Source of the DNA: Octopus sinensis
Taxonomy: Eukaryota
DNA length: 64,000 nucleotides
Reading direction: 5' to 3'
Assembly (NCBI RefSeq): GCF_006345805.1
Contig: NC_043000.1
Location: 93,062,001-93,126,000 of the forward strand
Part shown: positions 1 through 64,000 of the stretch, piece after piece
Numbering within the stretch: position 1 is the stretch's first letter
Layout: each line of letters starts with the position of its first letter
Translations under genes and position numbers: made by a program
The notes under the pieces: model-generated
The model's input: the letters and a program-made list of their open reading frames with translations, nothing else
Database searches by the model: none
What the model was told of the DNA's origin: nothing

Positions 1-129
1 ATACACACACACACACACATATGTATGTATTTTTGTACATAGCCTGAACACTCTGTATGTATATATATTTATGTGAGGTGGGACTGAAAGCTCCTGACTT
101 TAAGAGTATTGCAAAAGGCTCGATAGGAG

Positions 130-1290
130 GCCCAAAATTTGAAATCATTATTATATAAAAATTCACAGTTTATTTTACTGGGTATGATGGAAAGTGTCAG
201 CTTCCCACAGCCATCAGACTATGGTGACACTTGTTCACTGGTCATGCTTCAAGAACCCTGCAAAGAATTCTTGTAATTCCAAGCAAAGCTGATCTTTCTA
301 TGCGTCCTACTTTCACACTTGCACCAGTCTTTTCCAGCGATGTTGGTACATGAGTGCTGATACTTCCAAGTGCACCAATTACCATTGGTATCATCTCTAC
401 TCTCCTCATTGACCACAACCTTTGTATTTCCCACTTTAAATCATCATTGTTTATTTTTTCTTCTGTTACATTGATGCTGTTGTCACTGGGACATGCTATG
501 TCGATGATCATACATGTTCTTTCTTTTTTATTCACCGCAACAATGTCCCATTTCCGATGTCTGGTCAGGTGATTGCACTGGGTCATTGCATCCCACAGGA
601 TTTTGCAATTCTCATTTTCAGTGACTCTTTCTGGAGTTTGCTCATACCATGTTTTTGCTCTTTGTAGGCCGTGCTTTCCACAGAGCTCCCAATGGATCAT
701 TCTTGCCACATTGTCATGGCATCTTTTGTATTTGAATTATGCTAATTTCAGGCATTCACTAATGATGTGCTATACCACTTCAACTCTCTCACCACACATT
801 CTGCATTTGTCGCTATCGGTAGTGTTGTCTATTCCACACTTCATATAATTGTTCCTTAATGCTTGTTCCTGAGCTGTGCATATGAGTGCTTCTGTCTCTA
901 TCTTCAGGTCACAACCTCCTCATCCATAGCCACCGGTCCTCTGTATCTGTCTTGGTGTTCACATCTCTTGCAAACTGACCGTACATTATCCTTTCATTCC
1001 ATGCTTTTTCTTTTTTTTTTGTTCATTTCTTATTTAAATTTTTCTTTACTCATGCAATTTTCAGTTTTGATGATGCCGGCCTTCTTCGTGTGTTTCAACA
1101 GCGACTCCACAGTATTTTTTATATACCACCCTAAGCCATTTTCCTCTGCTTCGATACAGTCCTGGTAACTGATAAAACCTCTCCCACTCCTTCTTTTGGA
1201 CAAGTACAGTCTATTATTTTTTCAAATTTTCTTCCATTTCTCACCAAGTATTTTCTGTACACCTAGGGCAGAGAAGCTCATTGTATGCAT
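130..1290 (-). mobile_element. Decayed R4/Dong-like non-LTR retrotransposon, 3' part (post-RT region, CCHC knuckle, restriction-like endonuclease)
   Basis: Minus strand reads LYLSKRRSGRGF, KIETEALICTAQEQALRNNY, KCRMCGE..HIISEC, R(C)HDNVAR, then ORF 242-709 ILWD..DIVAVNKKERTCMIIDIACP..IPMVIGALG. Several stops and frameshifts. Confidence 0.85.
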
Positions 1291-1384
1291 TCCTAGATTA
1301 CACACGCAAATTCACAGGTAAAATCTGTATTTAAAAAAATTAATAAACAAATAAATTCATGAATGGATGTTGTTTTCACAGCGA

Positions 1385-1696
1385 TAATGCTCTTCTCAGT
1401 ACATGAGTCAGCCCAGTTAACACAATTTTTTGCACTTCCTGTAGGGATGGTAAGCCTGGTATCATTTTCAAATAGGTTTCAGTACCTTTTTTTATTATTC
1501 CTAGAGATCCTACAATCATTAGTACTGTAGTGGCCTTGAGATGTCATATTTTTCAATTTCTATTAGCAAGTCTTTATATTTACTGATCTTGTCAAATTCT
1601 TTCGCTGCTATATTGTGATCGCAAGGAACACTCATGTCAATAAACACACCTTTTTTGTCTGATCTTTTATAATAATATCCGGTTTATTAGCTTTTA
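1385..1696 (-). mobile_element. Second R4/Dong-like LINE fragment, RLE C-terminus, 5'-truncated
   Basis: Minus strand ANKPDIIIKDQTKKVC/LIDMSVPCDHNIAAKEFDKISKYKDLLIEIEK..IVGSLGIIKKG..QKIVLTGLTHVLRRALS. Confidence 0.8.
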
Positions 1697-1767
1697 TTCA
1701 TTATTATTAAAAGCTAATAAAATTATTATAAAAGCTAATAAAATTATTATAAAAGCTAATAAACCGA

Positions 1768-1768
<1 letters not shown>

Positions 1769-1839
<71 letters not shown>

Positions 1840-1844
1840 CATCA

Positions 1845-1918
<74 letters not shown>

Positions 1919-1920
1919 TT
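1769..1920. repeat. (ATT)n microsatellite
   Basis: Direct reading. Confidence 0.95.
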
Positions 1921-2088
1921 AGCAGCATTTCATCTGTCTTTACATTCTGAGTACAAATTCCAGAAATTGACTTTGTGTTCCATCCTTTCTGAGTTGATAA
2001 ACTTAGTACCAATTATGCACTGGGATCGATGTAATCGGCTTAATACCTTTCTCCAAATTTGAGGCCCTGTGCTTCCAGCAGAAAGAAT
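1920..2088 (+). mobile_element. SINE family A (tRNA-derived, ATT-flanked), partial copy
   Basis: ttctgagtacaaattcc..ctttgtgttccatcctttc..agtaccaattatgcactgggatcgatgtaatc matches the intact copies at 20051 and 63755. Confidence 0.75.
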
Positions 2089-2100
2089 TATTATTATTAT

Positions 2101-2992
2101 TTACTTTTAATCTGCATGCTTGTTACAAATCACTTACCGAGACAAACCCAGCGTCCTAGGGTGAGTGAAGGATAAGAGATGTTACAGTATGCCTGAAAGT
2201 TTGGGGAGAGGAAGTGGCAAGGGCAGTAGCAAAATATTTTCATGTAATACAATGCAGACATTTAAATTGACAAAGTTTTTCTAAAGATGTGGGCAGTACT
2301 GGTCAGCACAACCATTTGGATTTCTCTTAGATATGGTTCTCTTAGGATATTATCCCGATATATCTCACATCCCTTTCTTATCATGCCTAAGGTACACACA
2401 ATAACAGGAACAGTTCTCGATTTAAGATGCCACATCTTTTGTATTTCAATTTCCATGTCCTTATATTTAATTTGTCAAATTCCTTTACAGATATATTTTT
2501 ATCAGTGGGTACACTTACATCTATTAGTCTACAAGTATTTTCTTCCCTGTCTTTAATAACTATGTCTGGTCGATTAGCCTGGATCATTCTGTTAGTGTTG
2601 ACTGGAAAATCCCAGAGGATAGTGACACATTTACCTTCAATGACTAGCTCAGGATGATGTTCATACCAGTAAGCAGGAATGCTGATTTTGTAGTGTTTAC
2701 ATATTTTCCTAAGTAAATACTGTCCTGCCCTATCATGGGGATTTTTGAATTCATTTGCTGTCAGCACGACATCTCAAGATGAGATGGTTTATTGTGTCAT
2801 TAAATTTATCGCAGAATCTGCATTTAGAGTCAGAGCTGTTTTGAAGAATATTAGCCTGGTAGATTTTCGTAACCAAGCTTTGATCTTGTGCCACTAATAG
2901 GAAACCTTCACTCTCTGCTTCCAGCCTTGAACTTCTCAGCCACTGATGGGTTGTTGCTTGGTCTACATCAGCATTTTGGATTCAAAGGATAA
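2101..2992 (-). mobile_element. Third R4/Dong-like LINE, 5'-truncated, with 3' UTR ending in (TAA)n
   Basis: HQWLRSS..EGFLLVAQDQSL..KCRFCDK..HLILRC; ORF 2387-2767 has HDRAG, ILWDF, NRPDIVI, IDVSVP; frameshifted ORF 2262-2456 gives the C-terminus. (ATT)n on the plus strand at both ends. Confidence 0.9.
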
Positions 2993-3005
2993 ATTATTAT
3001 TATTA

Positions 3006-4271
3006 TCAGGTCATTAAGAATGAAATGTCTGATTTTGAACTGAAAGTTTATTTTACTTTATCTCAACAAAAAGCATTGCAGTTAATCAAAGTATGCACCT
3101 AAATTATCAACATAATCTTGCCATTTTATGGGTAGCTTATTTATGCAAGCAGCAAAGAATTCTGGAGAGCAAGGGGTGATGAAATCACGAAAGGCTGTAA
3201 TTGCATCTTCTTCAGATTCAAAGTTTTTTCCTTGCAAAAAGTTGTCTAATGCCTGGAAAACATGATACTCAGTTGGTGCAACGTCTGGGGAATATGGTAG
3301 ATGACAGAGTACTTCCAGGTTCAGTTCCTGTAACTTGAGTAGCGTTCTTTGTGCAACATGTGGTGAAGCATTGTCTTGCAAGAGAATTGGCCTGTCTCTA
3401 TAAACCAATTTTGGTTGCTTAATTGCAAGTTCACTCATCATTTCATCCAGTTGGTTGATGTATATATCCACTATAATTGACTTACCAGGTCTCATGAAGC
3501 AGTAATGGATGACACCAGCATTGGACCACTAAATAGGCACCATTAGCTTATTTTGGTGAATATTCTTTTCTGGATTGTGCTTTGGTACTTTGTCTCTATC
3601 CAACCACCATGCAAAACGTTTGCTGTTGTTGAAAAGAACACATTTTTCAACACACATAACATGATGCAAAAAGAGTTCGCTTTTATGCCATGACAGCAAA
3701 GATCAGCAAGTTTCAAGATAACGTGCTCATTAAGTTTGTGTGATACCTACATGTCCAGCTTCTTTACCTTGCTAATTTGTTTCAGATGGTTCAATACTGT
3801 TGGAATTGAAACATCTAACCTTGCTATAACTCACACGTAGTTTGAGATGTATTCACTTACACTACAGTTTTCAGCTCATCATTATCCACCTTGGTCTCAG
3901 GTCTACCACGGGGATGATTTTCAAGAGTAAAGTCACCAGACCAGAACTTCTCAAAACATTGATATACAGTGCACTCATTCACCACATCTTCACCAATTAC
4001 CTCGTTGATGTTTCAAGCTGTCTGGGATGCATTGGTTCCACAACAGAACTCATATTCATAAACAACACAAATCTTTTATCTATCCATGGGTTCACAAAAA
4101 CTGATTTACAAGAGAAAACTCACAATACAATCAGACACCATAAAATGCATTTTGAAAAGTGATGTAAGCTCTTCAATGTTGTAAAACAAAGAATTGTCAG
4201 CATAAAACGTTAGAGTTGTCTGTCAAACTTGGTGCATAAGAAAATTGGACATTTCATCCTTAATGACCTGA
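3006..4271 (-). mobile_element. Full-length decayed mariner (DD34D-type) transposon, 1266 bp
   Basis: TIRs tcaggtcattaagaatgaaatgtc (3006) and gacatttcatccttaatgacctga (ends 4271), each flanked by TA. ORF 3082-3495 has LLQDNASPH and PYSPDVAPTEYHVF and ends GAYFD. Confidence 0.95.
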
Positions 4272-4284
4272 TATTATAATTATA

Positions 4285-4337
<53 letters not shown>

Positions 4338-4349
4338 CATTATTATTAT

Positions 4350-4543
4350 TAAGACTGCAAACTGTCAGAATCTTTAGTGTGCTGACCAAAATGCTTAGGA
4401 GCATTTTACCTGTCTTTACATTCAATTTCTGCTGTAGTCCTTCTGGGGTTGATAAAATAAGTACCGGTCACATACTAGGCTTGATGTAATTCACTTTCCC
4501 CTCCCCTTACAAATAATAGACCCTGTGCCAAAATTTGAAACCA
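4350..4543 (+). mobile_element. SINE family A, diverged copy between (ATT)n and (CAT/ATT)n
   Basis: aagactgcaaactgtcagaatc..gataaaataagtacc..aatttgaaacc. Confidence 0.7.
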
Positions 4544-4673
4544 TCATCATCATCATCATCATCATTATCATTATTATTATTATAATTATTCCTTCACCCT
4601 TGTGACAAATAAATGAAATCATCATCCTCATCATTATTATTGTTGTTGTTATTATTATTATTATTATTATTAA

Positions 4674-4755
<82 letters not shown>

Positions 4756-7690: not shown

Positions 7691-8550
7691 GCAATGTTTG
7701 CAGAAAGTTAGAGAAGAATCAATGTTGGTACCATTTGTCTAGAGTATTGTTGGAGAGCGGGAAACTGTATACAGGACAAAACTGTTCCTTTACCCTGACC
7801 TGCCCCACAATCTTTGACATTTCCTAGACGAGAAAGTAATTCCTTTTCTTCCACTTAAATTCCATTCTATTCAAACCTCACTTCACAGATTATAAAAAAG
7901 AAAAGAAACAGAAATACTAGTCGTACCGGTATAAATCATGATGGTGTTTGAGCTTATTGAGGTTAATGACAACACTTTCTAGTGCTGAACTAATTAGACG
8001 ATAAACAATAGACTGCCTGTCATATTTTCTTAGTCTACGGTGTGTTGTGGGGGACAATGGTGGTGGCGGTAGTGATTAAGAAATAAATATACACAAAATG
8101 CATTAAATAACATATGATCAAAGACTATTTAAGCTTTTTGTTTTTATGCTTTTTATGAGTTTTCCCATCAATTTTGTTATTTGACCAATGACTCCCACAA
8201 CTTGGTTTGCTGTGGGAGTACTAACTGTCTCACTTCTCACCTTTTGTTAATCACCTCTCCACCAAGGAATGCAATAAAGTTTTATCGAGCCAATGAAATA
8301 GTCTCCTCAATGTGGCAGTCTGAATTGCTGGAAATAGCTGCTAAATCTCTCTGAAACCAACACCCTGACATCTTAAACAAGGAAAGAATGCACTGGATAA
8401 TGTACTTTTATGCATCTTGTAAAAAAAAACAGTTGGGATATTTGTGGAACATTCTTTAGAGTTGAATGCCCTGAAGAACTAGGAAAGCCTTGAGTGGCCA
8501 AAGCTTTGTGAGTGGATTTGGTAGACAGGAACTGAAATAAGAATGTCATA

Positions 8551-8610
<60 letters not shown>

Positions 8611-9663
8611 TGTGTGTGTGTGCATGTGTATTGCTGGTGCTTTGCCTTGATATTGCATCATAGTTGTGAATGTCACCATAAGGTAGGCAGTATCTTTCAT
8701 TTCCAGTTTCCTTTGAAGTCATGCCTGGTCAAAAGAAAACATTACTTTACTTGGAAACAGGTGAGGGTTGATGAACAGAAGGGCATCTACCTCAACAAAT
8801 TCTGTCCAAGTCATTCAAGAATGGAAAAGTAAAATTGTTGATGATGATGATGAAAATGAAATGTGTATATATTGCACTCATGCTGATGCCATGGGAAAGC
8901 GCTCATGGGCCCGGTTTCCTGGTTTCAATGGCGTATGTGTTCTTCAGCTGGACAGGATGCCACTCCATCGCAGCATTATGTTATATTATATTGTAATATA
9001 AATAAATTGATAGATCGTCACTTGTATTTCTTTTTTTAATATATATATATATATTAATGATTTGTAGGGACAAGGTATTTTGTTAGGCAACCATAATATT
9101 ACTATAAAGTATATTAAATGTTTTATAAGTCAATACCATATTCTACTATGTTAGCAGTGTGCTTCCCATCACTTGTTAAGGTTATCTTTACGGATATTCT
9201 ATAGAAATTATAGCCAGCACTAATTTTTCTTATGTCTTGGATACAAAACATCGTAAAAAAATGAGGGCTGGCTATAATTTCTATATAGTATTTGTAAAGA
9301 TAGCCTTAACAATTGATATATATATATATGCATGTATGTATGTATGTATGTATGTATGTATGTATGTATGTATGTATGTATATGAAATATTCAAGTTCCA
9401 ACCAGATTTTATACGTATTCTCTTTGCTTTTCAAGTGCATGATGGACATCCATCACTCACGCTAAATTGACCAGACAGAGAATGACATGGAACCACAAGT
9501 GTAAAGTATAATGTAATCTTGAGCACACAATATTCCTACATGTCAGTAATGATTTTCCTAGGTCATGAGTGGACGGCCATCATGTATATAAATATATATA
9601 TCGTTTGTTGAAATACATAAATCTGGAGGAGAAGCACACTCTTAGATGTAGAGCAGTTAATAT

Positions 9664-9829
9664 TATAGTAGAGTAGGCAGGTTTATGGAGTTACCCTAAG
9701 TTTCTTGCTCATAAGGGCATTAGCTTTATGGCGCATCTTCAAGCCCCAAACAGGGGTCTGAAAGTATGCTGTAAGGCTAAACCCCTTATGAGCAAGAAAC
9801 ACAGGGTAACCCCCAAAACTGACTTACCC

Positions 9830-13966: not shown

Positions 13967-14746
13967 CAAAGTCTGATCAATAAGTATCCAGACTGTTGCT
14001 ATAGTAACAAAGCTAAAGGATGCAGAGTGACGTCGCTTGGCACAGATTGACGTTGAACTCTGCTAGATATGTGCATTATGTTTTAACATTCTAGCTCCCT
14101 TCTGTTTACAGCAGTGCATGGAGAGGAGTGTATGAGATGCACACAAGTGTACAAGTGGCTCAGACGGTTTCAAGGTGACTGATAAAATGTCAATAGTGAC
14201 AAAAAATCTGGGAGACCCACAACCAGCAAAACTGAGAAAAACATTGCAGATGTGCATGCTGCTGTGAGCAGAAATCATCAAACCACCATTTGTGAGTTAT
14301 CAGAGGATGTGCAAATTAGTTACAGTTCAGTTCAATCCATTATCAAAGAAGATTTGGGTATGAAACACATGTCTGCCAAGTTTGTGCCAAAACTATTTTC
14401 AGCTGACTAAAAAGACACTTGGGTTTCAGTTGCACAAAATCTCCTTGATTGTGTCAAGAATGATGGAAACACTTCGAAAACTTTGCATAGGCCTCTGAGC
14501 ATTTATCACCAAGCTTTTGACAAAATTTGATGCAGATTCTCTGCTCAACTTTCTCTGTCATGGTCAATGAGATGATCACATGCTATAAATGTTCTTTCCA
14601 AACACTGCTGTAAACAGTAGAAGTCAGCTGGAACTTTAAAACATGCACAACAGAGTTTAAGGCCAATCTGTGCCAAGCACCTCCACTCTGTGTGCTCTAG
14701 CTTTGTTACTATGGCAACAGTCCAGATACTTATTAATCAAACCACA
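13967..14746 (+). mobile_element. Internally deleted mariner with ~100-bp imperfect TIRs, retaining the N-terminal HTH region
   Basis: VYKWLRRF..SGRPTTS..EDLGMKHMSAKFVPKL; left ctgatcaataagtatccagactgttgctatagtaacaaagcta mirrors right tagctttgttactatggcaacagtccagatacttattaatc; TA flanks. Confidence 0.85.
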
Positions 14747-15002: not shown

Positions 15003-15195
15003 GGTGGAGGTGCATGGCTGGGTGGAGGTGCATAGCTGGGTGGAGGTACATGGCTGGGTGGAGGTGCATAGCTGGGTGGAGGTGCATGGCTGGGTGGAGG
15101 AACGTAGCTGGGTGGAGGTTCATGACTGGATGAAGGCATGTGGCTGGGTGGAAGTGCTTTGGTGGGTAGAGGTGCATGGCTGGGTGGAGGCATGT
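15003..15195 (+). repeat. 18-bp minisatellite (ggtggaggtgcatggctg), about 10 copies
   Basis: Direct reading; runs straight into a SINE C head. Confidence 0.9.
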
Positions 15196-15325
15196 GGCTT
15201 AGTGGTTAGAGTGCTGGACTCATGATCATAAGATTGTGGTTTCATTTCCTGACCAGGCAATCCATTATGTTCCTGAGCAAAACACTTCATCTCCTATTGC
15301 TCTGGTCCATTCACCTGTAGAAATG
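15183..15325 (+). mobile_element. SINE family C, 5' part
   Basis: ggtggaggcatgtggcttagtggttagagtgctggactcatgatc..ctgagcaaaacacttcat. Confidence 0.75.
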
Positions 15326-18200: not shown

Positions 18201-18351
18201 CATAAAAAAAAAGATGCGCCCTTTTAAAGTCTAGCCAGGCTCGTAGGCCCGGTTTCCTGGTTTCTATGGTGTATGTGTTCCCCAGCTATGTATATGTATA
18301 TATGTATATGTAGATACTTATGTATCTATATGTATATATATATATATTCAT

Positions 18352-18666
18352 ATGTGGGCACAGGACGTCATGAAACATGTACAACAAAAATACGAAGTAC
18401 GAGTACATGGAATATGAACTAATTTTTTTAACAATGAAAGACAAATGAAAAACAAGACAAACAACATAAAGAAAGCCCCTTCATCAGTTGTTGGCTTGTT
18501 TTTCTACTCTCGTATTTCGAGCATTTAACAACAATATACACTTTCTTTATATTGTTTGTCTTGTTTTCCATTTGTGTCTTTCGTTTTCCCCCAAAATAAT
18601 TCATATTCCATGTGCTTGTACTTCATATTTTTTGTTGTACACGTTTCATGGTGCCCTGTGCCACAT
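18352..18666. mobile_element. Foldback element: ~120-bp inverted arms around a ~65-bp loop, in (TA)n
   Basis: gtgggcacaggacgtcatgaaacatgtacaacaaaaa.. mirrors ..ttttttgttgtacacgtttcatggtgccctgtgccac. Confidence 0.85.
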
Positions 18667-18667
18667 A

Positions 18668-18699
<32 letters not shown>

Positions 18700-19232
18700 C
18701 GTATAGATGTAAGTATGTACACATATGTATGTATATATGCGCTTATATATATATATATATATTACATAAAGTCTGTTCTGTCTGTCTGTCTGTGTATCTT
18801 TTGGGATCTCAGGCATCCTCCATCTGATTGCGCTCAAATTTGCTCTCTTTATCATAATCTCTACTAATTCACTCTCCTTTCTCTTCCAATTGGAGTATCC
18901 ATGTATCTACTCTATATCATGATACCTATCTCTGTCCCTCTATACCATTAGTCTCTCATCAACTGACACAAAGACACCCCTTCCCAGTTGAGGGGATCTG
19001 TTCTGAAAGTAATTTGCTGGTCTTCTTACTGGTGCCACATGAAAAGCATTGGTACTGGTGTCACATAAAAACACCAAGTAAATTCTTAAAATGTTTGATA
19101 TCAGGAAGGACATGCAGCTGTAGAAACCATGCCAAAACAGGTATTGGATTTGGAGTGGCTCCTGGCCATGCCAACCTCTGTCAAACTATCTAATCAATGC
19201 TTGCACGTGAAATGGACATTAAATGATGTTGA

Positions 19233-19278
<46 letters not shown>

Positions 19279-19459
19279 ATGTATGTATGTATATATGTAT
19301 ATGTATGTATTTATATACATACATATATATATATATATATATTTATATACATACATATGCATATATATATATATATATATATTGATAGATATACAGATAT
19401 GCATCCACATATATATATATATATGTGTGTGTATGTATGTATTTGTGTGTCTGTTTTTG

Positions 19460-19650
19460 TCTCCCTCCCCACCATATCTTGACAACCGATGTTGGTGTGT
19501 TTACATCCCCATGACTTAGTGGTTCAGCAAAAGAGACTGATAGAATAAGTACTGCGCTTACAAAGAATAAGTCCTGGGGTCAATTTGTGCAACTAAAGGC
19601 AGTACTCCAGCCTAGCCACAGCCAAATGACTGAAATAAGTAAAAGAACAC
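19460..19650 (+). mobile_element. SINE family B, 3' half
   Basis: ttgacaaccgatgttggtgtgtttacatcccc..agaataagtcctggggtc..aaatgactgaaataagtaaaag. Confidence 0.8.
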
Positions 19651-19720: not shown

Positions 19721-20050
19721 CACACACACACATAAAAATGAAAAGAAAATGGACATATACAATTGTCAATTCAAAAATTAAAATTTATTAACATAATATC
19801 ATATAATGTTATAGTCATATAATAATATAATAAATATTAAATACAAATTACATAGAATTGTTTCGATTCTTACCCATAATAAACTAATATAAATCCATGT
19901 TTGTGGGTAAGACTCTCTTCAATGTAATATTTGATATATGAGGAGTTACAGATCCAAGTTATATATATAAGAATGTTGCAGTTTGCTTCAAGCATTGTTA
20001 CATCGAAGAAGATAAAAAGCAAGAAAATGTACCTATTGTTCAAGATATTC

Positions 20051-44645: not shown

Positions 44646-45006
44646 TACAAAAATTCTATAATTATGAGTATAATTATAATTAGGGTTCAGCAAAAATTTG
44701 CTTCACCACATACCGAAATTTAGAAATAGCAGTTAAATCTACTATTTCACAGCCATAAGAAAATCTCCCAGACAGCAATACTCAACAACTCACACAGGTA
44801 AAGAGAGAAAAAAAAATTGAAGCTGGCTGAATTCATTGTTTTTTCTGTCTTTAACTGTGTGAGTTGTTGAGTATTGCTGTCTGGGAGATTTTCTTATGGT
44901 AGTGAAATAATAGTTTTAACAGCTATTTCTAAATTTTGGTATGTGGTGAAGCAAATATTTGCTGAACACTAATTATAATTATACTCATAATTATAGAATT
45001 TTTGTA
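44646..45006. mobile_element. Near-perfect 361-bp foldback element
   Basis: tacaaaaattctataattatgagtataattataattag..actcacacag mirrors ctgtgtgagt..ctaattataattatactcataattatagaatttttgta. Confidence 0.9.
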
Positions 45007-47028: not shown

Positions 47029-47134
47029 AGTCTAGCACACATCTAAAACCTCTTTCAGTGCAAATTACACAGTTGATGACATTCTGTACCCATATATGCA
47101 TACATATATATATACACATATATATACATATATA

Positions 47135-47180
<46 letters not shown>

Positions 47181-47279
47181 TATATATATTATATAAATAT
47201 ATATATATATATATACACACATATATATATTATATATAAATATATATATATACACACATATATATATTATATATAAATA

Positions 47280-47688
47280 GGCGCAGGAGTGGCTGTGTGG
47301 TAAGTAGATTGTTTACCAACCACATGGTTCCGGGTTCAGTCCCACTGCATGGCACCTTGGGCAAGTGTCTTCTACTATAGCTTCAGGCCGACCAAAGCCT
47401 TGTGAGTGGATTTGGTAGACAGAAACTGAAAGAAGCCCATCGTATATATGTATATATATATATGTATGTGTATATGTTTGTGTGTCTGTGTTTGTCCCCC
47501 TAGCATTGCTTGACAACCGATGCTGGTATGTTTATGTCCCCGTCACTTAGTGGTTCAGCAAAAAGAGACCGATAGAATAAGTACTGGGCTTACAAAGAAT
47601 AAGTCCAGGGGTCGAGTTGCTCAATTAAAGTTGGTGCTCCAGCATGGCCGCAGTCAAATAACTGAAACAAGTAAAAGAGTAAAGAGTA
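47280..47688 (+). mobile_element. Intact SINE family B, in (TA)n
   Basis: A box TGGCTGTGTGG, B box GGTTCAGTCCC, internal TA/TG tract, 3' aaaagagtaaagag. Confidence 0.92.
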
Positions 47689-50007: not shown

Positions 50008-50689
50008 GGTGTAGGCATGGCTGTGTGGCAAGAAGCTTGTTTCTCAACCACATGGTACTGGGTTCAGTCTCACTGCGTGGCCCCTTGGGTGAGTATCTTC
50101 TACTAAAGCCTCGGGCCAACCAAAGCCTTGTGAGTGGATTTGGTTGATGGAAACTGAAAGAAGTATGTATATATTTGTGTTTGTCCCCTGTAACTTAGCA
50201 GTTCGGCAAAAGAGACCAATAGAGTAAGTACTAGGCTTACAAAGAATAAGTCCTAGAGTTGATTTTTTCGACTAAAGGCGCTGCTCCAGCATGGCCACAG
50301 TCAAATGACTAAAACAAGTCAAAGAATAAAAGAATGTATATATATATATTATATATATATATAGGTGTAGGCATGGCTGTGTGGCAAGAAGCTTGTTTCT
50401 CAACCACATGGTACTGGGTTCAGTCTCACTGCGTGGCCCCTTGGGTGAGTATCTTCTACTAAAGCCTCGGGCCAACCAAAGCCTTGTGAGTGGATTTGGT
50501 TGATGGAAACTGAAAGAAGTATGTATATATTTGTGTTTGTCCCCTGTAACTTAGCAGTTCGGCAAAAGAGACCAATAGAGTAAGTACTAGGCTTACAAAG
50601 AATAAGTCCTAGAGTTGATTTTTTCGACTAAAGGCGCTGCTCCAGCATGGCCACAGTCAAATGACTAAAACAAGTCAAAGAATAAAAGA

Positions 50690-50691
<2 letters not shown>
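50008..50691 (+). mobile_element. Two essentially identical tandem SINE B copies, period 356 bp
   Basis: Starts at 50008 and 50364; both share the same private substitutions and internal deletion. Confidence 0.92.
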
Positions 50692-50725
<34 letters not shown>

Positions 50726-50753: not shown

Positions 50754-51170
50754 CATCATCATCATCATTTAATGTCCGCTTTCCATGCGTTGCATAGTTT
50801 GACTGAGGACTGGAAAGCCAGGTGGCTGCACCATGCTCCAATCTGATCTGGCAGAGTTTCTACAGCTGGATGCCCTTCCTAACACCAACCACTTTGAGAG
50901 TGTAGTGGGTGCTTTTATGTGCCACCTGCATGAAGGCCAGTCAGGCGGTACTGGCAACAGCCATGCTCAAATGGTATTTTTTACATGCTGACTGCACATG
51001 AGCCAGTCCAGCAGCACTGGCAATGACCTCGCTCGAATGTTGTTTTTCACTTGCCAGTAAGGCGATGCTAGTAGCGATCATGCTCAAATGGTGCTTTTTA
51101 CATGCCACTGGCACATGAGCCAGTCAGCGGCCCTGGCAATGATCATGCTCGGATGGTTCTCTTAATGTTC
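50754..51170 (-). mobile_element. RTE-type 3' UTR remnant
   Basis: (cat)n ttaatgtccgctttccatgc..ctacagctggatgcccttcctaac. Confidence 0.8.
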
Positions 51171-51244
51171 CACAAGTTTCCTACACAGAGATCAGAACTT
51201 TTTACACAGCTGTCCTCGTCCATGTATATATTATATAGTGTAAT

Positions 51245-54630: not shown

Positions 54631-55131
54631 TGAATTGTTAAGACCAAGTATTCAAAATGGTGTTGATAGTATGCAAAATTGAAGATACCTCAAACAAGCA
54701 AAGTTAGTTGAAATCAAGAAAAAGATATACATAGGCATGTACAAGGGAGTGTTCAAAGGAAGACTTTATAACTGCTTTGTAATGTAGACAATTTCCATGC
54801 CTCTTTGAATTAAATAGAAAGTGTATTCTTTCTATTTTGCAATGACCAAATTTTCTTGGTTTATTTACATATCACTTCGATTTTCAATGACGTTTTAAAC
54901 CCTTTACTCAACGTTCCAGTTTAGCATTTAGCAAATTTTACTTACTAGTGATTGGAATTTGTTTTATTTGTGTCTAAAAGTGGCTCATAGTTATAAAGTC
55001 TTTCTTTGAACATTCCCTTGTACATGCCTATGTATATCTTTTTCTTGATTTCAACTAGCTTTGCTTGTTTGAGGTATCTTCATTTTCGCATACTATCAAC
55101 ACTATTTTGAATACTTGGTCTTAACAATTCA
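54631..55131. mobile_element. MITE with ~150-bp TIRs
   Basis: tgaattgttaagaccaagtattcaaaat..gactttataact mirrors agttataaagtc..ttttgaatacttggtcttaacaattca. Confidence 0.88.
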
Positions 55132-56265: not shown

Positions 56266-56352
<87 letters not shown>

Positions 56353-56519
56353 GATTTATATATATGTATATGTGTGTGTGTGTATATATATATATACATA
56401 TATATACAGAGAGACAGACAGATACAGGTACACATAATTACAAATATGGATATAGATATACATATATTCATATATATTATACATGTAGGTATGTGTGTGT
56501 ATCTGTGTGTGTGTGTGTG

Positions 56520-56665
56520 TGTGGAAATCTTCAAATATCACCTGGACAAATTTCTATCAGAAATCCCAGATGAGCCCACATTGCAGCAAGAAGCACAGAG
56601 AAGTACAGCTCCATCCAACTTGCTTCTTCACCAAAAACAGTACAGAATGGAAACTCCAAAACATT
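56520..56665 (+). mobile_element. CR1-group LINE, extreme 3' coding end
   Basis: EIFKYHLDKFLSEIPDEP..PSNLLLHQ, the usual FKxxLDxFLxxIPDEP terminus. Confidence 0.7.
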
Positions 56666-56734
56666 GAAAGGCAGTGCTCCAGCATGGTCCCAGTCTTTAG
56701 CTGAAACCGGTAAAAGAATAAAAGAAAAGAATTG

Positions 56735-57125
56735 CTGTGTGGTAAGTAGCTTGCTTACCAACCACATGGTTCCGGGTTCATTCCCACTATGTGGCACTTT
56801 AGACAAGTGTCTTCTACTATAGCCTCTTGCTGACCAAAGCCTTGTGAGTGGATTTGGTAGACAGAAACTGAAAGAAGCCTGTCGTATAATTGTATATATA
56901 CATATGAATGTGTATGTATATGTTTGTGTGTCTGTGTTTATCCCCCCAACATCGCTTGACAACCGATGCTGGTGTGTTTACGTCTCCGTATCATAACGGT
57001 TCGGCAAAAGAGAATGATAGAATAAATACTAGGCTTACAAAGAATAAGTCCTGGGGTCGATTTGCTCGACTAAAGGCGGTACTCCAGCATGGCCACAGTC
57101 AAATTACTGAAGCAAGTAAAAGAGA
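56735..57125 (+). mobile_element. SINE family B, near full length
   Basis: gctgtgtggtaagtagcttgc..gggttcattccc..aagtaaaagagag. Confidence 0.9.
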
Positions 57126-57459
57126 GTAAATGTATATGTATATCTCTGTAAGTAAGTATGTATGTATGTATGCATGTATAGTGCAGCTATTATGCAAATA
57201 ACATGCAAGAAGGAAATTAAATTGCACATGCAAAAATTGAATATATTTCATTTCAAATCAGGTGCATAGCCCCTGCATAGAACTTTATTCAATGCCAAAA
57301 TATATCCAGTTATATAGATTTAAAAAGAAAAATGCCAATAGCTCTTTGTCTCTGCAAGATAACTTTTTGGTTTACTTGCATTCAAGAATTCAGTACATTT
57401 CAATGTCTTACCATGATGAAATCATCATCATCATTATCATCATTATTATCATTATTATT

Positions 57460-57672
57460 AAGGTAGCGAGCTGGCTGAATCATTAGCATGCTGAGCAAAA
57501 TGCTCAGAAGAATTTCATCTGTCTTTACCTTCTGAGTTCAAATTCTGCTTAGGTCAACTTAGCCTTTTATCATTTCTGGGTCGATAAATTAAGTTCCAGT
57601 TATGCACTGGAGCTGATGTATCTGACGCATTCCTTCTCCCAAAATTTCTGGTCTTGTGCTAAAATTTGAAAC
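57460..57672 (+). mobile_element. SINE family A between ATT repeats
   Basis: attattaaggtagcgagctggc..ctgagttcaaattc..aatttgaaactattatta. Confidence 0.85.
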
Positions 57673-57932
57673 TATTATTACCTCTGCCTTGTGGAGGCAC
57701 GTGGCTTAGTGGTTAGGGTGTTGAACTCATGATCAAAAGGTTGGGATTTCGCTTCCTGGACCGGGCGATGAATTGTGTTCTTGAGCAAAACACTTCATTT
57801 CATGTTGCTCGAGTCCACTCAGCTGGCAAAAATTAGTAATCCTGCAATGGATCCTGTCCAGGTGGAGAATTTCTACACCACTGAAACCAAAAAACTGGCC
57901 CTTATGAGCCTGGCATGGCTCGAGAAGGAACA

Positions 57933-58295
57933 TTACCTCTACCTTAGCGAAGATGGAGGTATTGTTTCAGTTGTTTGTTTGTTTGTCTGTGGACAAGATA
58001 TCTCAAGAACCACTGGATAGATTCGAATGAAACTTTTAGGGTTGTTTGGCTTCATGACTAGCACAAACTGATTAGATTTTGGGATCAATCTGGTACCAGA
58101 CAAGGATTCTGGATTATTTTTCCAGTTTTTTAACTTAATTTTTGAGAGCAGTCAGGTTCATCTTTAGTATTCTCATTTGTGAGAACAGTTGAGTTTATAT
58201 CAGATATTCTCATTTTAAAAATCATCTTCGGCTAATCGTTGAGAGGATGTTAGCATTGCCTTGGCGGAGAATTGCCCTCTCTGAGTGCTCTTGTT
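57933..58295 (-). mobile_element. HINE-like element, copy 2
   Basis: Reverse complement of the 63198 copy; ends ctcttgtt|attatt. Confidence 0.65.
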
Positions 58296-58483: not shown

Positions 58484-58485
<2 letters not shown>

Positions 58486-58700
58486 GGTGACGAGGTGGCA
58501 GAATTGTTAACATGCCAAGCAAAATGCTTAGCAGAATTTCATCCATCTTTACATTCTGAGTTCAAATTCCATTGAGATCAACTTCGCCTTTCATCCTTTC
58601 AAGGTCGATAAATTAAGTACCAGTGAAACACAGGGGTCGATTTAATCGACTAGTCTCTTCCCCAAAACTTTCAGGCTTTGTACCTATAGCAGGACATATT
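58484..58700 (+). mobile_element. SINE family A between ATT repeats
   Basis: attattaaggtgacgaggtggcag..ctgagttcaaattcc. Confidence 0.85.
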
Positions 58701-58721
58701 ATTATTATTGTTATTATTATT

Positions 58722-59279
58722 GAATGAGAGATCAGTGCATGCCATCAAAGTGACACTGCGGTACAAATATACGAAGTCCAGTATACCCATCATGACTACT
58801 CGTCTGATAAGGGTACACCAGGCACATGCATCACAACCATATGTGCACGACATGGTGATCTCATATCAAGATAAACAGCACATGACCTTGCAGGTGGGGC
58901 CCAGTTAGAATTTTCTTCAGGTTGAGTAGCCCATCCTGCTCAAAAGATCCCTAAATAAGAGTTGTTTAAGGATGTTGAACGAAACACCTATGTTTCCAAA
59001 GGTGAATTATCCAAACCTCTAAGAATTCCTTTTAACACACAGCTCTGATGCTCCCCAACTACTTCTGCTCATGATCAGAGATGCACATATCATCGGCCGT
59101 TAGGGGACATGCTTAACTGGTTAAGTTCAAACAACTAACAAGCAAATCTGTGGTACTGAGCAGAATATTTGCTGTAACCCATCTTTTATAGCAAGACAAA
59201 ACAATGTACATGATAACACATCCAATCAGTTAAGATCAGCAGCCATGAGAGCCACTGCCTGGTACTGCATCAGGGCATT
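58722..59279 (-). mobile_element. Unclassified ~550-bp non-coding interspersed element in (AAT)n, copy 1
   Basis: Inverted homologue at 62092-62615; (ATT)n on plus at both ends. Confidence 0.8.
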
Positions 59280-59323: not shown

Positions 59324-59394
59324 TTCATTTCACTACCGAGCGCAGCTCTGTGTGCCTTGGGTATGTGCTGTGCTGCGCTCGGTAGTGAAGTGAA
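59324..59394. other. Hairpin with 23-bp arms (1 mismatch) and a 25-nt loop
   Basis: ttcatttcactaccgagcgcagc ... gctgcgctcggtagtgaagtgaa. Confidence 0.9.
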
Positions 59395-59500: not shown

Positions 59501-60059
59501 TTGTTAATATTATTATTATTCAGGTAGTCACCTGGCAGAATTGTTAGCACACCAGACAAAATGCTTCGAGGCATTTCATCTGTCTTTACATTCTGAGTTC
59601 AAATACCGCTGAGGTCAGCTTTACTTTTAATCCTTTTGGATAAGATATAGTCTCTGGAGGAGAGACAGTGCTCACAGACTTTACAAAATCCTGTGTCCAA
59701 GATTGGTGACAAAACAGCAGATGTACAAATCCCTTCTAATCACTTCTAATTGCTTCTAATCACTGCATTGATGGTAAAAAATTAGCCTTGCTAAAACTCA
59801 GCAGCTATGGATAGGCTTGGTAGCATATGAAACAGTCTACAGAGGAGAAATTCTGGGAATAAAATCCTTGTCATACCTATTAGTGGGCTCCCACAGGAAC
59901 AAAATAAAATGGTAGAAATAATGAAAATAATCAAAACTCCATGCAGGGTAGATGCAATAGAAAGCAAATCCTCAAGATATCTATCATCCTCGCATAAAGA
60001 ACAGATCTCAAACATTGCATGGATTCTTGAGTGGGTATTTCTGAGGGAATTTAAGATTT

Positions 60060-60490: not shown

Positions 60491-61997
60491 TTAAACCAAG
60501 AATCAGAGTAAAAGCTCATTAGCACCATTCCTTATAACATCCTCTTAACGAATTCCATTGTCTCTAATTGAGCTTTCTAATTTATAAGTGTAAAGCCAGC
60601 AATTTAGGGGCTAAGTTAATACTATCAACCCTAGTGCATGACTGGTACTTTATTTTGGTGTCTAAATTAGAGACAAGGCAAGAAATATTATGCCCCAGGG
60701 GCACAACCAAGAGCTCATTGATTACATTGGTTAACTGGTACTTTATTTTGTTGACCCCTGGAAGGATGAAAGGCCAAGTTTATCTCAACAAGATTTGAAC
60801 TCAGAATGTAGTGTCAGAAAAAAATACCACAATGCACTTTTACTGTTTCTCTAATAATTCTTCAACTCATTGCCATGTAGTGTTCTTCTAATGATATTGA
60901 TATGATTAATTACTTTATTACAAACCCTGCTCAAATCAGATGTGTTTGCAGCTAGCCATGTGATGACCTCACTTGTTTTTGGAGGTCACCTAAAAGTCCT
61001 GCAAAGACCTCAAAAAACTCAAACAAAATATAATAATAATAATATAATGATAATAAACAAAAGGAAGGAAGTTCCAGGAAGGATATCCAGCAAGAACTTA
61101 GCACACCTTATTGTTAGAAATAAGGAATGATTAAGTCTAAAAGAGACAATCGTTGGTTACATGTTAATCTCAACCAAAATGGAAAATTGTAATTGATTCT
61201 TGCCAACTTTGACCATTAATGAATCTCCTTGAATTCTTCTGATTATTATCTTTGGTTGCAAGCATAAATATAGTATAAGCAAAGTAGATAAATAAATAAA
61301 TAAATACATAAACAATCTCTTTACTCCTATGCTCTACATATTCATCTCAGCCTCTGCTCTGCCGTCTCTACCACCACCCTAAGCATTACTCCCACCAATC
61401 CATTCTATCACAGTTATTACCATTCTTGCTTCCTTTCACCACCAACACCACCACTATCGCCATTGCATCGCCTTTGCCACCACCATTGTTACCAACAGCT
61501 CTGCTGCCACTTCCACCACCGCCACCACTTCCACCACCGGCGCCTCTGTCACCACCACTACCTCTACTGCAACAATGCACTGCTATCTCCTAGGACATTC
61601 CTGCCGGAATAACTGAGCTAAGCCAGACTATCAACAACAACGACAACAACAATAACGAAAGCAAACAACAGTAAGAACAAAACGGTGGCAAAGGAGGGTG
61701 GTGATGGTGGAGGGGGATGGGCGGCTTGAAAATCAGAAGTTAGCAAAAATAAAAACAAAAATAAAAATAAAAATAAGGATAAAAATAAATGCAATAAGCA
61801 GAAAAAGAGGAAAAAAGATAAAAAAAGATAGCGGAAAGTAAAACTGAGAAGGCTACTTAGAGAAGTAGGCCAATAATCATAACAACATCCCAGAAACTGG
61901 ACAGACAGGAGAACATTGTTCTATGGATCGTATTGATCCAGGCTGGTACCACTACTGCTGCTGTTATTACCACCACTACTGCTGTTCCTGCTACAAT

Positions 61998-62070
<73 letters not shown>

Positions 62071-62091
62071 TAATAATAATGAATATGATGA

Positions 62092-62615
62092 TGATGTAGT
62101 ACCAGACAGTGGCTCTCATGGCTTCTGATCTTAACAAGTGTTATCATGTACATTGTTTTGTCTTGGTATAAAAGATGGGTTACAGCAAATATTCTGCTCA
62201 ATACCACAGATTTACTTGTCAGTTGTTTGACCTTAACCAGTTGACCATGTCTCTTAGTGGCTGACAATATGTGCATCTCTGATCACGAGCTGAAGTTGTT
62301 GGGGAGCATCATAGCCATGTGTTGAGGGGGATCCTTTGGGGTTTGAATAATTCACCTCTGGAAACATGGGTGGTTCGTTCAACATCCTTAAACAGCCCTT
62401 ATTCAGAGACCTTTTGAGCGGGATGGGTTACTCGACCAGAAGAAAATTCTAACTGGGCCCCACCTGCAAGGTCATGCACTGTTTATCTTGATATGAGATC
62501 ACCATGTTGTGCACATATGGTTGTGATGCCTGTGCCCAGTGTACCCTTATCAGACGAGTAGTCATGATGGGTATGCTGGGCTTTGTATATTTTACCCCAG
62601 TGTCATTTTGATGTC
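62092..62615 (+). mobile_element. Unclassified non-coding element in (AAT)n, copy 2
   Basis: gtagtaccagacagtggctctcatgg..gtcattttgatgtc|aataataat. Confidence 0.8.
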
Positions 62616-62639
62616 AATAATAATAATAAGAAGAAAAAT

Positions 62640-63175
62640 AATAATTTCTACTATAAGCACAAGGCTTGAAATTTTGGAGGAGAGGGCTAGTCGATTAGAT
62701 CAACCCCAGTACACAACTGCTTCTTAATTTATCGACTCTGAAAGGATGAAAGGGAAAGTCAACCCCAGCGGAATTTTAGCAGGCAAAATACCGCTAAGCA
62801 TTTTGTCCAGCATGCTAATGATTCTGCCACCTCAACACCTTGGTGAGGAATTTGAACTCAGAATGTAAGGACAGACGATATGCTGCTAAGCATTTTGCCT
62901 AGTGTGTTAATGATTCTGCCAGCTTGCCACCTTAATAATAATAATAATGATAATAATAATCCTTTCTACTATAGGCACAAGGCCTGAGAATTTGGGAGAG
63001 TGGGTGAGTTGATTACATCGACCCCAGTATTTCACTGGTACTTATACTATCGATCCTGAAAGGATGAAAGGTAAAGTCAACCTCGGTGGAATTTGAACTC
63101 AGGATGTAGTGACTGGCAAAATACCACTTAACATTTTGTTCAGTGCACTAATGATTCTGCCAGCTCACCACCTAA
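62640..63175 (-). mobile_element. Cluster of SINE A copies separated by (AAT)n
   Basis: Repeated gaaaggatgaaagg..aagtcaac..ggaatttgaactcag..atgattctgcca. Confidence 0.85.
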
Positions 63176-63197
63176 TAATAATAATGATAATAATAAC

Positions 63198-63536
63198 AAC
63201 AAGAGCATTCAGAAAGTGCAAAACTCTGCCAAGGCAACACCAACATCCTCTTAATGATTAGCTGGAGATGATTTTTAAGACAAGAATATCTGAAATAAAA
63301 ACTTGACTCCTCTCACAAATGAGAATACTAAAAATGAACCCGACCGCTCTCAAAAATTAAGTAAAAAAACCAGAAAAATAATCCAGAATCGTTGTCTGGT
63401 ACTGGATCAATCCCAAAATCTAATCGGTTCATGCCAGTTATGAATGCATTCAACGGTTCTTGAGATATCTTGTCCATGGACAAACAAACAAATTTGACTG
63501 AAAACAATACCTCCGCCTTCGCTAAAGCGGAGGTAA
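63198..63536 (+). mobile_element. HINE-like element, copy 3, best preserved
   Basis: 5' aacaagagc..ctctgccaaggc; 3' hairpin acctccgc(cttcgctaaa)gcggaggt then aa; AAT flanks. Confidence 0.65.
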
Positions 63537-63754
63537 TAATCATGATAATAATAATATAGTTATCAAGGTGGCAAAATGGTGCAATATCTAGCACACTGGA
63601 CAAAATACTTAGCAGTATTTCGTCAGTCTTCACATACTAAATTCCAGTTCCACCAAGGTTGACTTAGCCTTTCATACTTCCAGAGTTGATAAAATAAGTA
63701 CTGAATTATCCCCTGTCCTGAAATTGCTGGCATTGTGCTAAAATTTGAAACCAT

Positions 63755-64000
63755 TATTATTATTAATATACCTATTTCTTTACTACCCACAAGGGGCTAA
63801 ACACAGAAGGGACGAACAAGGACAGACAAATGGATTAAGTCGATTACATAGACTCCAGTGCGTAACTGGTACTTATTTAATCAACCCTGAAAGGATGAAA
63901 GGCAAAGTCGACCTCGGCGGAATTTGAACTCAGAACGTAGCGGCAGACGAAATACTGCTAAGCATTTCGCCCGGCATGCTAATGTTTCTGCCAGCTTGCC
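63755..64000 (-). mobile_element. Well-preserved SINE family A, running to the window edge
   Basis: ggcaagctggcagaaacattagcatgccgggcgaaatgc..ctgagttcaaattccgccgaggtcgac. Confidence 0.9.

Follow-up and report, generated by a model that had tools for sequence, protein, structure and literature searches.

Retroelement ends and simple repeats in a 64-kb stretch of the Octopus sinensis genome: preferred but shared microsatellites as probable targets

Introduction

Do retroelement families divide the simple repeats of a genome among themselves, each with a niche of its own, or do they share them? The question is raised by a stretch of 64,000 nucleotides from Octopus sinensis (NCBI RefSeq assembly GCF_006345805.1, contig NC_043000.1, positions 93,062,001 to 93,126,000 of the forward strand; the whole stretch is called the window here), in which the ends of long and short interspersed elements (LINEs and SINEs) repeatedly abut microsatellites. 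An earlier note, made from the sequence alone, had read these juxtapositions as a partition, in which a community of sequence-specific endonucleases and their SINE passengers divides up the simple repeats and may help explain the repeat load. Our analysis partly supports this reading: most of the juxtapositions are real, and the families share repeats. We consider it the probable explanation, though well short of certain, that RNAs with simple-repeat tails favor matching repeats for integration without being confined to them, each tail being the next target, and that the window displays a mix of such homing, of repeats brought by the elements themselves, and of facultative preference.

Microsatellite targeting by retroelements has been documented in several clades. 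Dong targets TAA repeats, as does the snail Dong, and Kibi, Koshi, Mino, and Waldo target other microsatellites (PMC3812793). Target-specific families have been described in the Tx1 and R1 clades (PMC4640811). The tails of RTE elements are simple repeats and generate microsatellites (PMC2887409), octopus RTE behaving likewise (PMC9115989), and RTE tail repeats correlate with the target site (PMC6007223). The recently active LINE groups annotated in Octopus vulgaris are RTE, Dong-R4, CR1, and L1-Tx1, of which Dong-R4 is the most abundant; the searched text of that paper mentions microsatellites only as a repeat category (PMC13282606).

Results

Microsatellites called with Tandem Repeats Finder (TRF; period of 6 or less, score of at least 40) form 82 loci totaling 7,437 bp, or 11.6% of the window, which corresponds to one locus per approximately 780 bp. 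At identical settings, a 20.9-kb locus of O. vulgaris (L004, chromosome OX597814.1) contains 1.1% microsatellite, yet it carries the same SINE and RTE families; octopus repeat density is very uneven across the genome. Masked self-comparison and alignments of the window defined the families SINE A (212 bp), SINE B (approximately 403 bp), SINE C, an RTE-like LINE 3' end, a repeat termed Fam4, and a 550-bp element. All LINEs in the window are 3' fragments only. Since Pfam found no reverse transcriptase (RT) or endonuclease domain among the 139 stop-to-stop open reading frames (ORFs) of at least 70 amino acids in the window, LINE identities were taken from C-terminal fragments and from relatives elsewhere. 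The best homologues of the LINE fragments are in Argonauta hians, Octopus bimaculoides, and O. vulgaris, which marks the window as nuclear DNA of an octopod. The DNA used for comparison comprised approximately 37 kb of other octopod sequence and two loci (L002 and L003) from another animal.

A comparison of element flanks with background, suggested by the earlier note as a genome-wide check and run here in the window, revealed family- and strand-specific enrichment. Sense (ATT)n stands at the 5' junction of 6 of 14 SINE A copies, where background would give 0.45% (binomial P = 2e-11), and the flanking repeat reads ATT in eight cases and AAT in none. Of 10 RTE copies, 4 have a 5' junction flush with (TA)n, whereas the background rate is 3.4% (P = 2.5e-4). 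Some adjacency is to be expected if elements and repeats merely accumulate side by side in a window as rich in both as this one, which perhaps recombines little. In Drosophila, passive accumulation of this kind has been put forward to explain Waldo near CA repeats (PMC3812793). It would fit the microsatellite density given above, the marginal association of SINE B with (TA)n (P = 0.03, approximately two independent copies), and the total of 27 of the 82 loci (2,847 of 7,437 bp, 38%) that lie within 15 bp of a recognized element end, a number that unrecognized families could raise and for which a rough expectation would be approximately 15. However, the class-specific probabilities for SINE A and RTE are far smaller, neither flush junctions nor an 8:0 strand bias is predicted by passive accumulation, and the pattern recurs in the repeat-poor O. 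vulgaris locus and in Argonauta. Chance is therefore, in our judgment, a very improbable explanation of the pattern.

The 5' junction of SINE A is almost invariably …ATTATTA|AGGTGG, its 3' tails are short (ATT)n, and the (ATT)n found 5' of a copy is often the tail of an earlier element, either another SINE A or Fam4. Copies were placed by alignment together with inspection of the sequence. Two full-length copies on the plus strand lie at 57460-57672, with (ATC/ATT)n upstream, and at 58484-58696, with (ATT)22 upstream and (ATT)n downstream. A 5' part at 59521-59647 (+) follows (TTA)42, which changes into (ATT)n. Three copies or fragments (62645-62850, 62837-62933, and 62963-63173) form a minus-strand cluster at 62645-63173 with sense (ATT)n between copies, and the outer copy is situated in a Fam4 tail. 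A further copy at 63565-63751 (+) carries an (ATT)4 tail and meets a SINE of the A2 type tail to tail. Between two (ATT)n tracts of the same region, a perfect hairpin with a 21-bp stem (CATTTCACTACCGAGCGCAGC … GCTGCGCTCGGTAGTGAAGTG) was noted at 59324-59394; its matches to microRNA models are weak and below threshold.

The earlier claim that SINE A usually sits in sense (ATT)n stands as far as junctions and strand bias are concerned, but unique-DNA insertions exist too. In the O. vulgaris locus, two copies are in unique DNA with target-site duplications (TSDs) of 17 to 19 bp, and three further copies are arranged in tandem at 8136-8770 of that locus with (ATT)n between them. Essentially all copies of a microsatellite-specific retroelement, as Kojima and Fujiwara use the term, are flanked by one and the same repeat on both sides; for SINE A, the count is 6 to 8 of 14 in the window, which is a preference and not strict specificity.

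A large (ATT)n locus at 1768-4755 (sequence and TRF) contains approximately 430 bp of repeat in pieces (1768-1916, 2087-2101, 2993-2996, 4272-4351, and 4542-4755) and has received four insertions, i.e., two SINE A copies, a Dong-like LINE fragment in the opposite orientation to them, and a mariner-like transposon. The first SINE A (1919-2086, +), placed by alignment and by its flanks, is 5'-truncated at consensus position 44, has (ATT)50 flush upstream and (ATT)5 downstream, and stands tail to tail with the Dong-like fragment; the second (4352-4541, +) lies in (ATT)n/(CAT)n(ATT)n. The mariner-like DNA transposon (2997-4272) was identified from a 23-bp terminal inverted repeat (TIR), CAGGTCATTAAGAATGAAATGTC, a TA duplication, and a decayed Transposase_1 domain, and it shares its (ATT)n tract with the Dong-like fragment and SINE A.

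The Dong-like LINE 3' fragment (2102-2992, -) was recognized by a CCHC knuckle, an RPDIVI...D motif of the restriction-like-endonuclease type, and tblastn. Sense-strand (AAT)n is present on both of its flanks, as the earlier note had stated for the best-preserved R4/Dong-like LINE, so that the (TAA)n insertion with sense repeat on both sides that characterizes Dong/R4 is seen here in one well-preserved copy. Read by eye, the C-terminus contains CRFC...H...C and RPDIVIKD...IDVSVP, and its zf-RVT match is below the cutoff; a PDB sequence search, which included solved R2 proteins, returned no match, and the putative endonuclease was assigned by eye. According to sequence matches, this is a widespread metazoan family. 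Relatives in the two loci from another animal are embedded in (AAT)n or arranged head to tail across (AAT)7. Two older coding fragments on the minus strand were found by tblastn and sequence inspection. The 5' end of the first (1355-1697) is approximately 70 bp from the (ATT)50 tract, with a 21-bp tandem repeat (1700-1763) between them. The 3' untranslated region (UTR) of the second (215-958) stops near 165 in a short AAT run, which meets what is probably the 3' part of a SINE A, tail to tail.

The 550-bp element, identified by self-comparison and sequence inspection, is present in two copies (58724-59276 and, inverted relative to the first, 62092-62616) that are 89% identical and lie within imperfect AAT/ATT repeats. 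The earlier note had placed it in sense-strand (AAT)n; the AAT/ATT setting is correct, whereas the words "sense-strand" amount to an assumption, as no evidence of polarity was found. The SINE A copies beside the two elements are 78% identical, like random pairs of SINE A, whereas the elements themselves reach 89%, and the SINE insertions therefore look independent. On the same figures, a single duplicated block of SINE A plus the 550-bp element was dismissed as the simplest account.

Read along opposite strands, (AAT)n and (ATT)n are a single repeat duplex, so that a tract occupied by Dong-type elements in one direction serves SINE A in the other. Tail-to-tail arrangements of a Dong-like or 550-bp element with SINE A occur at 2087-2101, 58697-58723 (where the full-length SINE A at 58484-58696 faces the first 550-bp copy), and 62617-62644, and probably also near 165.

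Every RTE copy in the window has a (GAT)n tail, and in six of nine copies, judged by eye, (TA)n follows this tail. The five RTE copies of the O. vulgaris locus each carry a (GAT)3-5 tail with unique DNA beyond it, and none touches (TA)n; two of these five are closely similar to the young copies of the window. It follows that (GAT)n is borne by the element and that (TA)n is not required. The possibility that (TA)n is part of the tail of young RTE copies was rejected, since highly similar O. vulgaris copies end in (GAT)n and unique DNA. The earlier placement of younger RTE copies in (TA)n is therefore accurate for the window, but the preference is facultative; with 4 of 10 window copies and none of five in O. 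vulgaris, RTE falls short of a microsatellite-specific element. A preference of approximately 10- to 20-fold would fit both the window, which is 5.8% (TA)n, and the O. vulgaris locus, which is approximately 0.5% (TA)n.

A stretch of flush (TA)n, 538 bp at 32339-32876, adjoins the 5' junction of a 5'-truncated copy (30969-32338, -; tblastn and homologues) that encodes an RT C-terminus with a PHD-like insert, has internal repeats of approximately 60 bp in its 3' UTR, and carries its own (GAT)9 tail. At 39083-40416 (-), alignment revealed two copies (39083-39354 and 39392-40416) whose (GAT)n tails are followed by (TA)n or TA-rich sequence; the 5' junction at 40416 is flush with (AT)n at 40417-40576. 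A copy with an internal deletion (41553-41845, +; alignment and tblastn) has (AT)135 flush upstream, and its (GAT)8 tail is continued by the internal (TA)n of the 5' half of a SINE B (41898-42051). The remaining copies were placed by alignment. A 3' copy at 43693-44025 (-) has a (GAT)7 tail followed by (TA)9 and a short (TA)5 at its 5' junction, and another at 50769-51176 (-) has a (GAT)5 tail adjoining the (TA)n tail of a SINE B. At 19052-19647 (+), an RTE 3' end (19052-19234), 190 bp of (TA)n (19235-19424), a SINE B 3' half (19425-19647), and (AT)n follow one another. Three older 3' fragments on the minus strand within 33780-34931 (33780-33994, 34114-34326, and 34615-34931) have (GAT)n tails followed by unique DNA. 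RTE tails thus run directly into the internal or tail (TA)n of SINE B at 19234, 41845, and 50769.

The RTE clade has a single ORF with an apurinic/apyrimidinic endonuclease and RT and a very short terminal simple repeat; what these copies show is an RT C-terminus and (GAT)n tails, and the 3' UTR, at approximately 500 bp, is not short. Pfam matched RVT_1 and PHD in RTE-like homologues and recovered no endonuclease domain upstream of the O. vulgaris RTE copy. In the octopus RTE-like RT, an inserted zinc finger of the PHD type separates the RT core from the C-terminal region (PF00628 in homologues P0132 and P0156 and in the O. vulgaris copy).

SINE B contains its own internal (TA)n(TG)n and ends in a TA-rich tail; the internal repeat is kept in the O. 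vulgaris copy. It has expanded to 190 bp at 19235-19424 and to 138 bp at 56269-56406. The latter belongs to a plus-strand arrangement at 56269-57140 (alignment) in which a SINE B 3' half follows the 138-bp (TA)n, located at the position of the internal repeat, and is succeeded by a second, full-length SINE B (56731-57124). Another copy of full length, approximately 403 bp, lies at 47278-47683 (+; alignment, with an A/B-box-like head recognized by eye) with (AT)n at 47092-47279 upstream. Self-comparison showed two copies with (TA)n at 50008-50692 (+) to be a tandem duplication, its 329-bp units (50008-50336 and 50364-50692) being 100% identical, which indicates a very recent duplication and not two insertions. 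The report of several SINE B copies in (TA)n thus shrinks to the two or so independent ones of marginal significance mentioned above, one pair being a tandem duplicate and the family carrying its own (TA)n(TG)n. SINE B is more a source of repeats than a guest in them.

SINE C had been described as having an ordinary 15-bp TSD in unique DNA. The copy at 57689-57929 (+), examined at the sequence level, does possess a 14- to 15-bp duplication, ATTACCTCTRCCTT, but its target is the 5' end of a Fam4 copy beside (ATT)n. This Fam4 repeat (57930-58295, +) ends in an (ATT)6 3' tail, and a second copy (63198-63537, -) is likewise (ATT)n-tailed, with an ATT-like flank at its 5' end; both were found by self-comparison and sequence inspection. 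Elsewhere, an 18-bp minisatellite, GGTGGAGGTGCATGGCTG, with approximately 10 copies at 15003-15190, adjoins the 5' end of another SINE C copy (15184-15317) and may be derived from the SINE head.

The last pairing concerns a 5'-truncated Tx1/L1-like LINE 3' end (21106-22286, +), identified by Pfam, homologues, and tblastn, which comprises the C-terminus of ORF2 with a zf-RVT domain (E = 2e-8) and a 3' UTR of approximately 470 bp terminating in GTGGCCAATAAAGAAAC. Its octopod homologues (Argonauta and Octopus) are 80% identical. TRF and the sequence place (TATC)n with a (TATG)n stretch at its 5' flank (20691-21105) and (TATC)n at its 3' flank (22287-22339). The repeat is flush with the fragment at both ends, and the background of this flank class is 0.22% per side. 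The placement of Tx1 in (TATC)n is accordingly confirmed for one copy.

A full-length relative in Argonauta contains Exo_endo_phos (an apurinic/apyrimidinic endonuclease [APE]), RVT_1, and zf-RVT, and among solved structures, human LINE-1 ORF2p is nearest to its RT. Between this relative and the zf-RVT of the window, the APE, RT, and C-terminal zinc-knuckle architecture of the Tx1 clade (L1 group) is represented. L1-Tx1 is the sole L1-type group among the recently active LINE families of O. vulgaris (PMC13282606, Table 1), and this family list suggests assignment to Tx1 rather than to L1 proper. The Argonauta hians locus (L001, 2790-9205) contains, in series, a Tx1-like 3' fragment, (ATT)18, three SINEs, the full-length Tx1-like LINE, and (ATT)4. 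The SINEs of this array are arranged head to tail, have clear A and B boxes, and have the 3' box of the LINE in common. Both Argonauta 3' ends precede (ATT)n, so the terminal repeat of that lineage is (ATT)n and not (TATC)n. The tally of targets for Tx1 is thus one copy in (TATC)n, two Argonauta 3' ends before (ATT)n, and one SINE A2 passenger in unique DNA. Logan contigs with Tx1-like relatives end at or before the 3' box, and flanks cannot be read in them.

The A2 passenger was recognized by alignment. One copy (20045-20285, -) lies outside microsatellites and has an imperfect duplication of approximately 9 to 11 bp, GAATATCTT; the other (63775-64000, -) is cut by the end of the window. The last 50 or so nucleotides of A2 match the Tx1-like LINE 3' ends of both octopods, a score reached in 0 of 300 shuffles, and they match neither the Dong nor the RTE ends. 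The common subtype, A1, ends in …GTGCYAAAATTTGAAAC followed by (ATT)n and has a weak version of the Tx1-like box, GCCTTGTGC-AAWA-GAAA (shuffle P = 0.003 to 0.3). Dong was rejected as the partner of SINE A, having no 3' end similarity and a tail on the opposite strand. Twenty metagenome loci with the shared 3' box CCYTGTGGNNAATAAAGAAAY were also set aside as chance matches, none being similar to any family of the window. A/B-box-like motifs are discernible by eye in the consensus sequences of SINE A, SINE B, and SINE C.

Whether the elements found these repeats or made them can be judged from truncated copies. A microsatellite flush with the 5' junction of a 5'-truncated copy indicates that repeat stood upstream of the insertion point and is not just a tail. 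Such junctions were found in the Tx1-like copy (21106), the Dong-like copy (2992), three RTE copies (32338, 40416, and 41553), and one SINE A copy (1919). If, instead, all flanking repeats were made by the elements, through slippage of tails, duplication of short targets, and expansion, pre-existing microsatellites would have no role as targets. Several observations are in line with such an origin: the (GAT)n of RTE is clearly element-borne, the internal repeat of SINE B has grown to 138 to 190 bp in two copies, SINE A tails are short (ATT)n, TSDs of 17 to 19 bp could duplicate a short repeat, and RTE elements are documented microsatellite progenitors (PMC2887409). However, the 5' repeats flush with truncated copies are long, with (ATT)50 at 1919, 415 bp of (TATC)n at 21106, and 538 bp of (TA)n at 32338. 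In addition, the (TA)n around RTE is unlike the (GAT)n tail of RTE itself, and four unrelated insertions, one of them a DNA transposon, share a single (ATT)n tract. We regard an origin from tails alone as unlikely.

The evidence for pre-existing targets does not extend to separate niches. In the AAT/ATT duplex one finds the Dong-like element, the 550-bp element, SINE A, Fam4, and a mariner; RTE, SINE B, and TIR or foldback elements have (TA)n in common. Palindromic elements of the latter type, 140 to 520 bp in length, were noted at 18349-18669, with (TA)n on both sides, at 28481-28998, 9681-9819, and 9168-9317, with (TA)n on or near one side, and at 44685-44967; this suggests that DNA-type elements also use (TA)n. 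Two further segments, 13971-14742 and 54631-55131, are bounded by long inverted repeats of approximately 155 bp (77% identity) and 143 bp (96% identity), respectively, and are probably nonautonomous DNA transposons. A direct duplicate of 450 bp (27127-27576 and 27950-28399, 95.6% identity, approximately 820 bp apart) was also observed, one copy of which begins directly after (TA)n.

The extent to which elements adjoin repeats varies among repeat classes. An element end was found at 7 of 9 AAT/ATT loci, 7 of 11 ATC/GAT loci, and 2 of 4 TATC loci but at 10 of 34 TA loci, 1 of 7 ACAT loci, and none of 6 AC loci. Elements thus account for some repeat classes and not for the dominant (TA)n or the (AC)n load. 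With 55 of 82 loci, including all (AC)n, lacking a recognized element end, the suggestion that a guild of retroelements explains the repeat load was not upheld.

The strictest form of the partition would give each family a sequence-specific endonuclease, its own or borrowed, and a separate microsatellite niche, with the guild largely explaining the repeat load. Flanks that are family- and strand-specific well over background are what it predicts, the Tx1-like and Dong-like copies of the window are embedded on both sides, and specialization on microsatellites is established for Dong and some Tx1-clade families (PMC3812793, PMC4640811). The AAT/ATT duplex is nevertheless used by five element types and (TA)n by three, SINE A and RTE of O. 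vulgaris occur in nonrepeat DNA, the Argonauta Tx1-like relative ends in (ATT)n and not in (TATC)n, and two-thirds of the loci have no recognized element end nearby. SINE A in unique DNA with TSDs and the absence of (TA)n from all O. vulgaris RTE copies likewise contradict obligate endonuclease specificity. Strict niches therefore appear improbable to us, and the claimed partition gives way to sharing.

Discussion

We favor preferential integration of repeat-tailed RNAs into matching repeats, with three components. Repeat homing would take a Dong-type LINE, of the restriction-like-endonuclease kind, into (TAA)n, and an (ATT)n-tailed SINE family and Tx1/L1-like LINEs into (ATT)n or (TATC)n. After a nick in the AT-rich repeat, the repeat tail of the RNA would anneal to the nicked strand during target-primed reverse transcription. 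Annealing of this kind would lead to strict orientation, flush junctions, and reuse of earlier tails. The established view of Dong is that its restriction-like endonuclease is sequence-specific; in the APE-type elements, endonuclease preference and tail annealing may each carry some of the weight. Element-borne repeats, i.e., the (GAT)n tail of RTE and the internal (TA)n(TG)n and TA-rich tail of SINE B, would expand in place. RTE would represent facultative preference, being some 10 to 20 times enriched in (TA)n and going elsewhere when (TA)n is scarce. Finally, Dong-type elements and SINE A, ending tail to tail, may seed targets for each other, which would produce nests and arrays in few tracts. 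What was observed directly, and what this account builds on, are the junctions, the bias in orientation, the enrichment, the tails that elements bring along, and the insertions at unique sites. We infer the annealing mechanism, what the endonucleases prefer, and which way causality runs in the growth of repeats.

Several points weigh against this explanation. Samples are small, with one Tx1-like and one well-preserved Dong-like copy in the window, and the pairing of Tx1 with (TATC)n is that of a single copy. Copies are clustered, e.g., at 57.4 to 64 kb, so that the binomial P values overstate independence. The element annotation takes in only families repeated within the window. The clade names Tx1, Dong/R4, and RTE were derived from fragments and relatives and should be read as likely assignments. 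The 3' similarity of SINE A1 to the Tx1-like LINE is weak, and a Tx1-like LINE is at most a candidate partner for it. ARAGORN and Rfam made no call of a tRNA-like SINE head in the window or in its 56.7- to 59.7-kb portion. At individual loci, moreover, flanks may have grown from a duplicated short target.

The components have counterparts in known systems. As in Dong of the R4 clade (Bombyx Dong, DongAg, and snail DongBg), the octopus element, judged by eye, appears to have a C-terminal CCHC and a restriction-like-endonuclease-type motif, and its 5'-truncated copies lie in sense (AAT)n on both sides and in tandem arrays, the relatives in another animal being alike. It differs in that 3' fragments only, without an RT domain, are present and in that the tracts also hold a SINE in the opposite orientation. 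Tx1-clade specialists (Kibi in (TC)n and Koshi in (TTC)n, with Mino in (AC)n among APE-type microsatellite-specific elements) resemble the Tx1-like LINE in the APE, RT, and zinc knuckle of the full-length relative, in one repeat type on both sides, and in a 3' box common to a SINE passenger. However, (TATC)n in the window, seen for a single copy, and (ATT)n in Argonauta are not listed for the Tx1 clade in the review PMC3812793. The octopus passenger SINE, A2, is also located outside repeats.

Stringent-type LINE/SINE pairs with repeat tails are known as well, for example, eel UnaL2/UnaSINE1. These and RTE-related SINEs (PMC6007223) likewise have a LINE/SINE 3' box in common, followed by a short tandem repeat with the same proposed role in priming, but they have not been reported to pile into arrays within matching microsatellites, and the octopus elements are known by sequence alone. 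RTE-clade microsatellite progenitors (Lepidoptera; octopus RTE-2_OV) share the very short terminal repeat, (GAT)n here, the frequent 3' partial copies, and the association with microsatellites. In the window, by contrast, the surrounding (TA)n is unlike the tail of the element, the flush 5' junctions suggest that (TA)n was there before the insertion, and the preference for (TA)n vanishes where (TA)n is rare. Micron MITEs (miniature inverted-repeat transposable elements) of rice in (TA)n and MINE-1 Helitrons in (GAAA)n recall the TIR/foldback elements of the window, such as 18349-18669 in (TA)n; being DNA-type and unrelated to retroelements, they only show (TA)n as a shared target.

The ingredients are thus known elsewhere, in the form of Dong in (TAA)n, Tx1-clade specialists, and RTE tails, and the window is a local example with a modest new twist. 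In the literature, we found no description of cephalopod SINE A/(ATT)n arrays or of tail-to-tail pairing of Dong and a SINE. More tentatively, octopods may possess a system in which the tail becomes the target, where Dong-type (AAT)n and a Tx1-driven (ATT)n SINE would seed sites for each other on opposite strands, and RTE and SINE B would do likewise around (TA)n. It would build nested arrays and could drive the growth of islands dense in microsatellites, of which this window, at 11.6% against 1.1% in the O. vulgaris locus, would be one; we hold this broader proposal to be possible but doubtful.

If the pattern applies genome-wide, it would provide a mechanism for the very high SINE and LINE content of octopus and for its patches of extreme microsatellite density, with repeat tails as both product and target of retrotransposition. 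Cephalopod microsatellite markers would then often be located beside SINE A, RTE, or Dong ends, which would lead to multilocus amplification, and repeat annotation should treat such composites as nests and not as new families.

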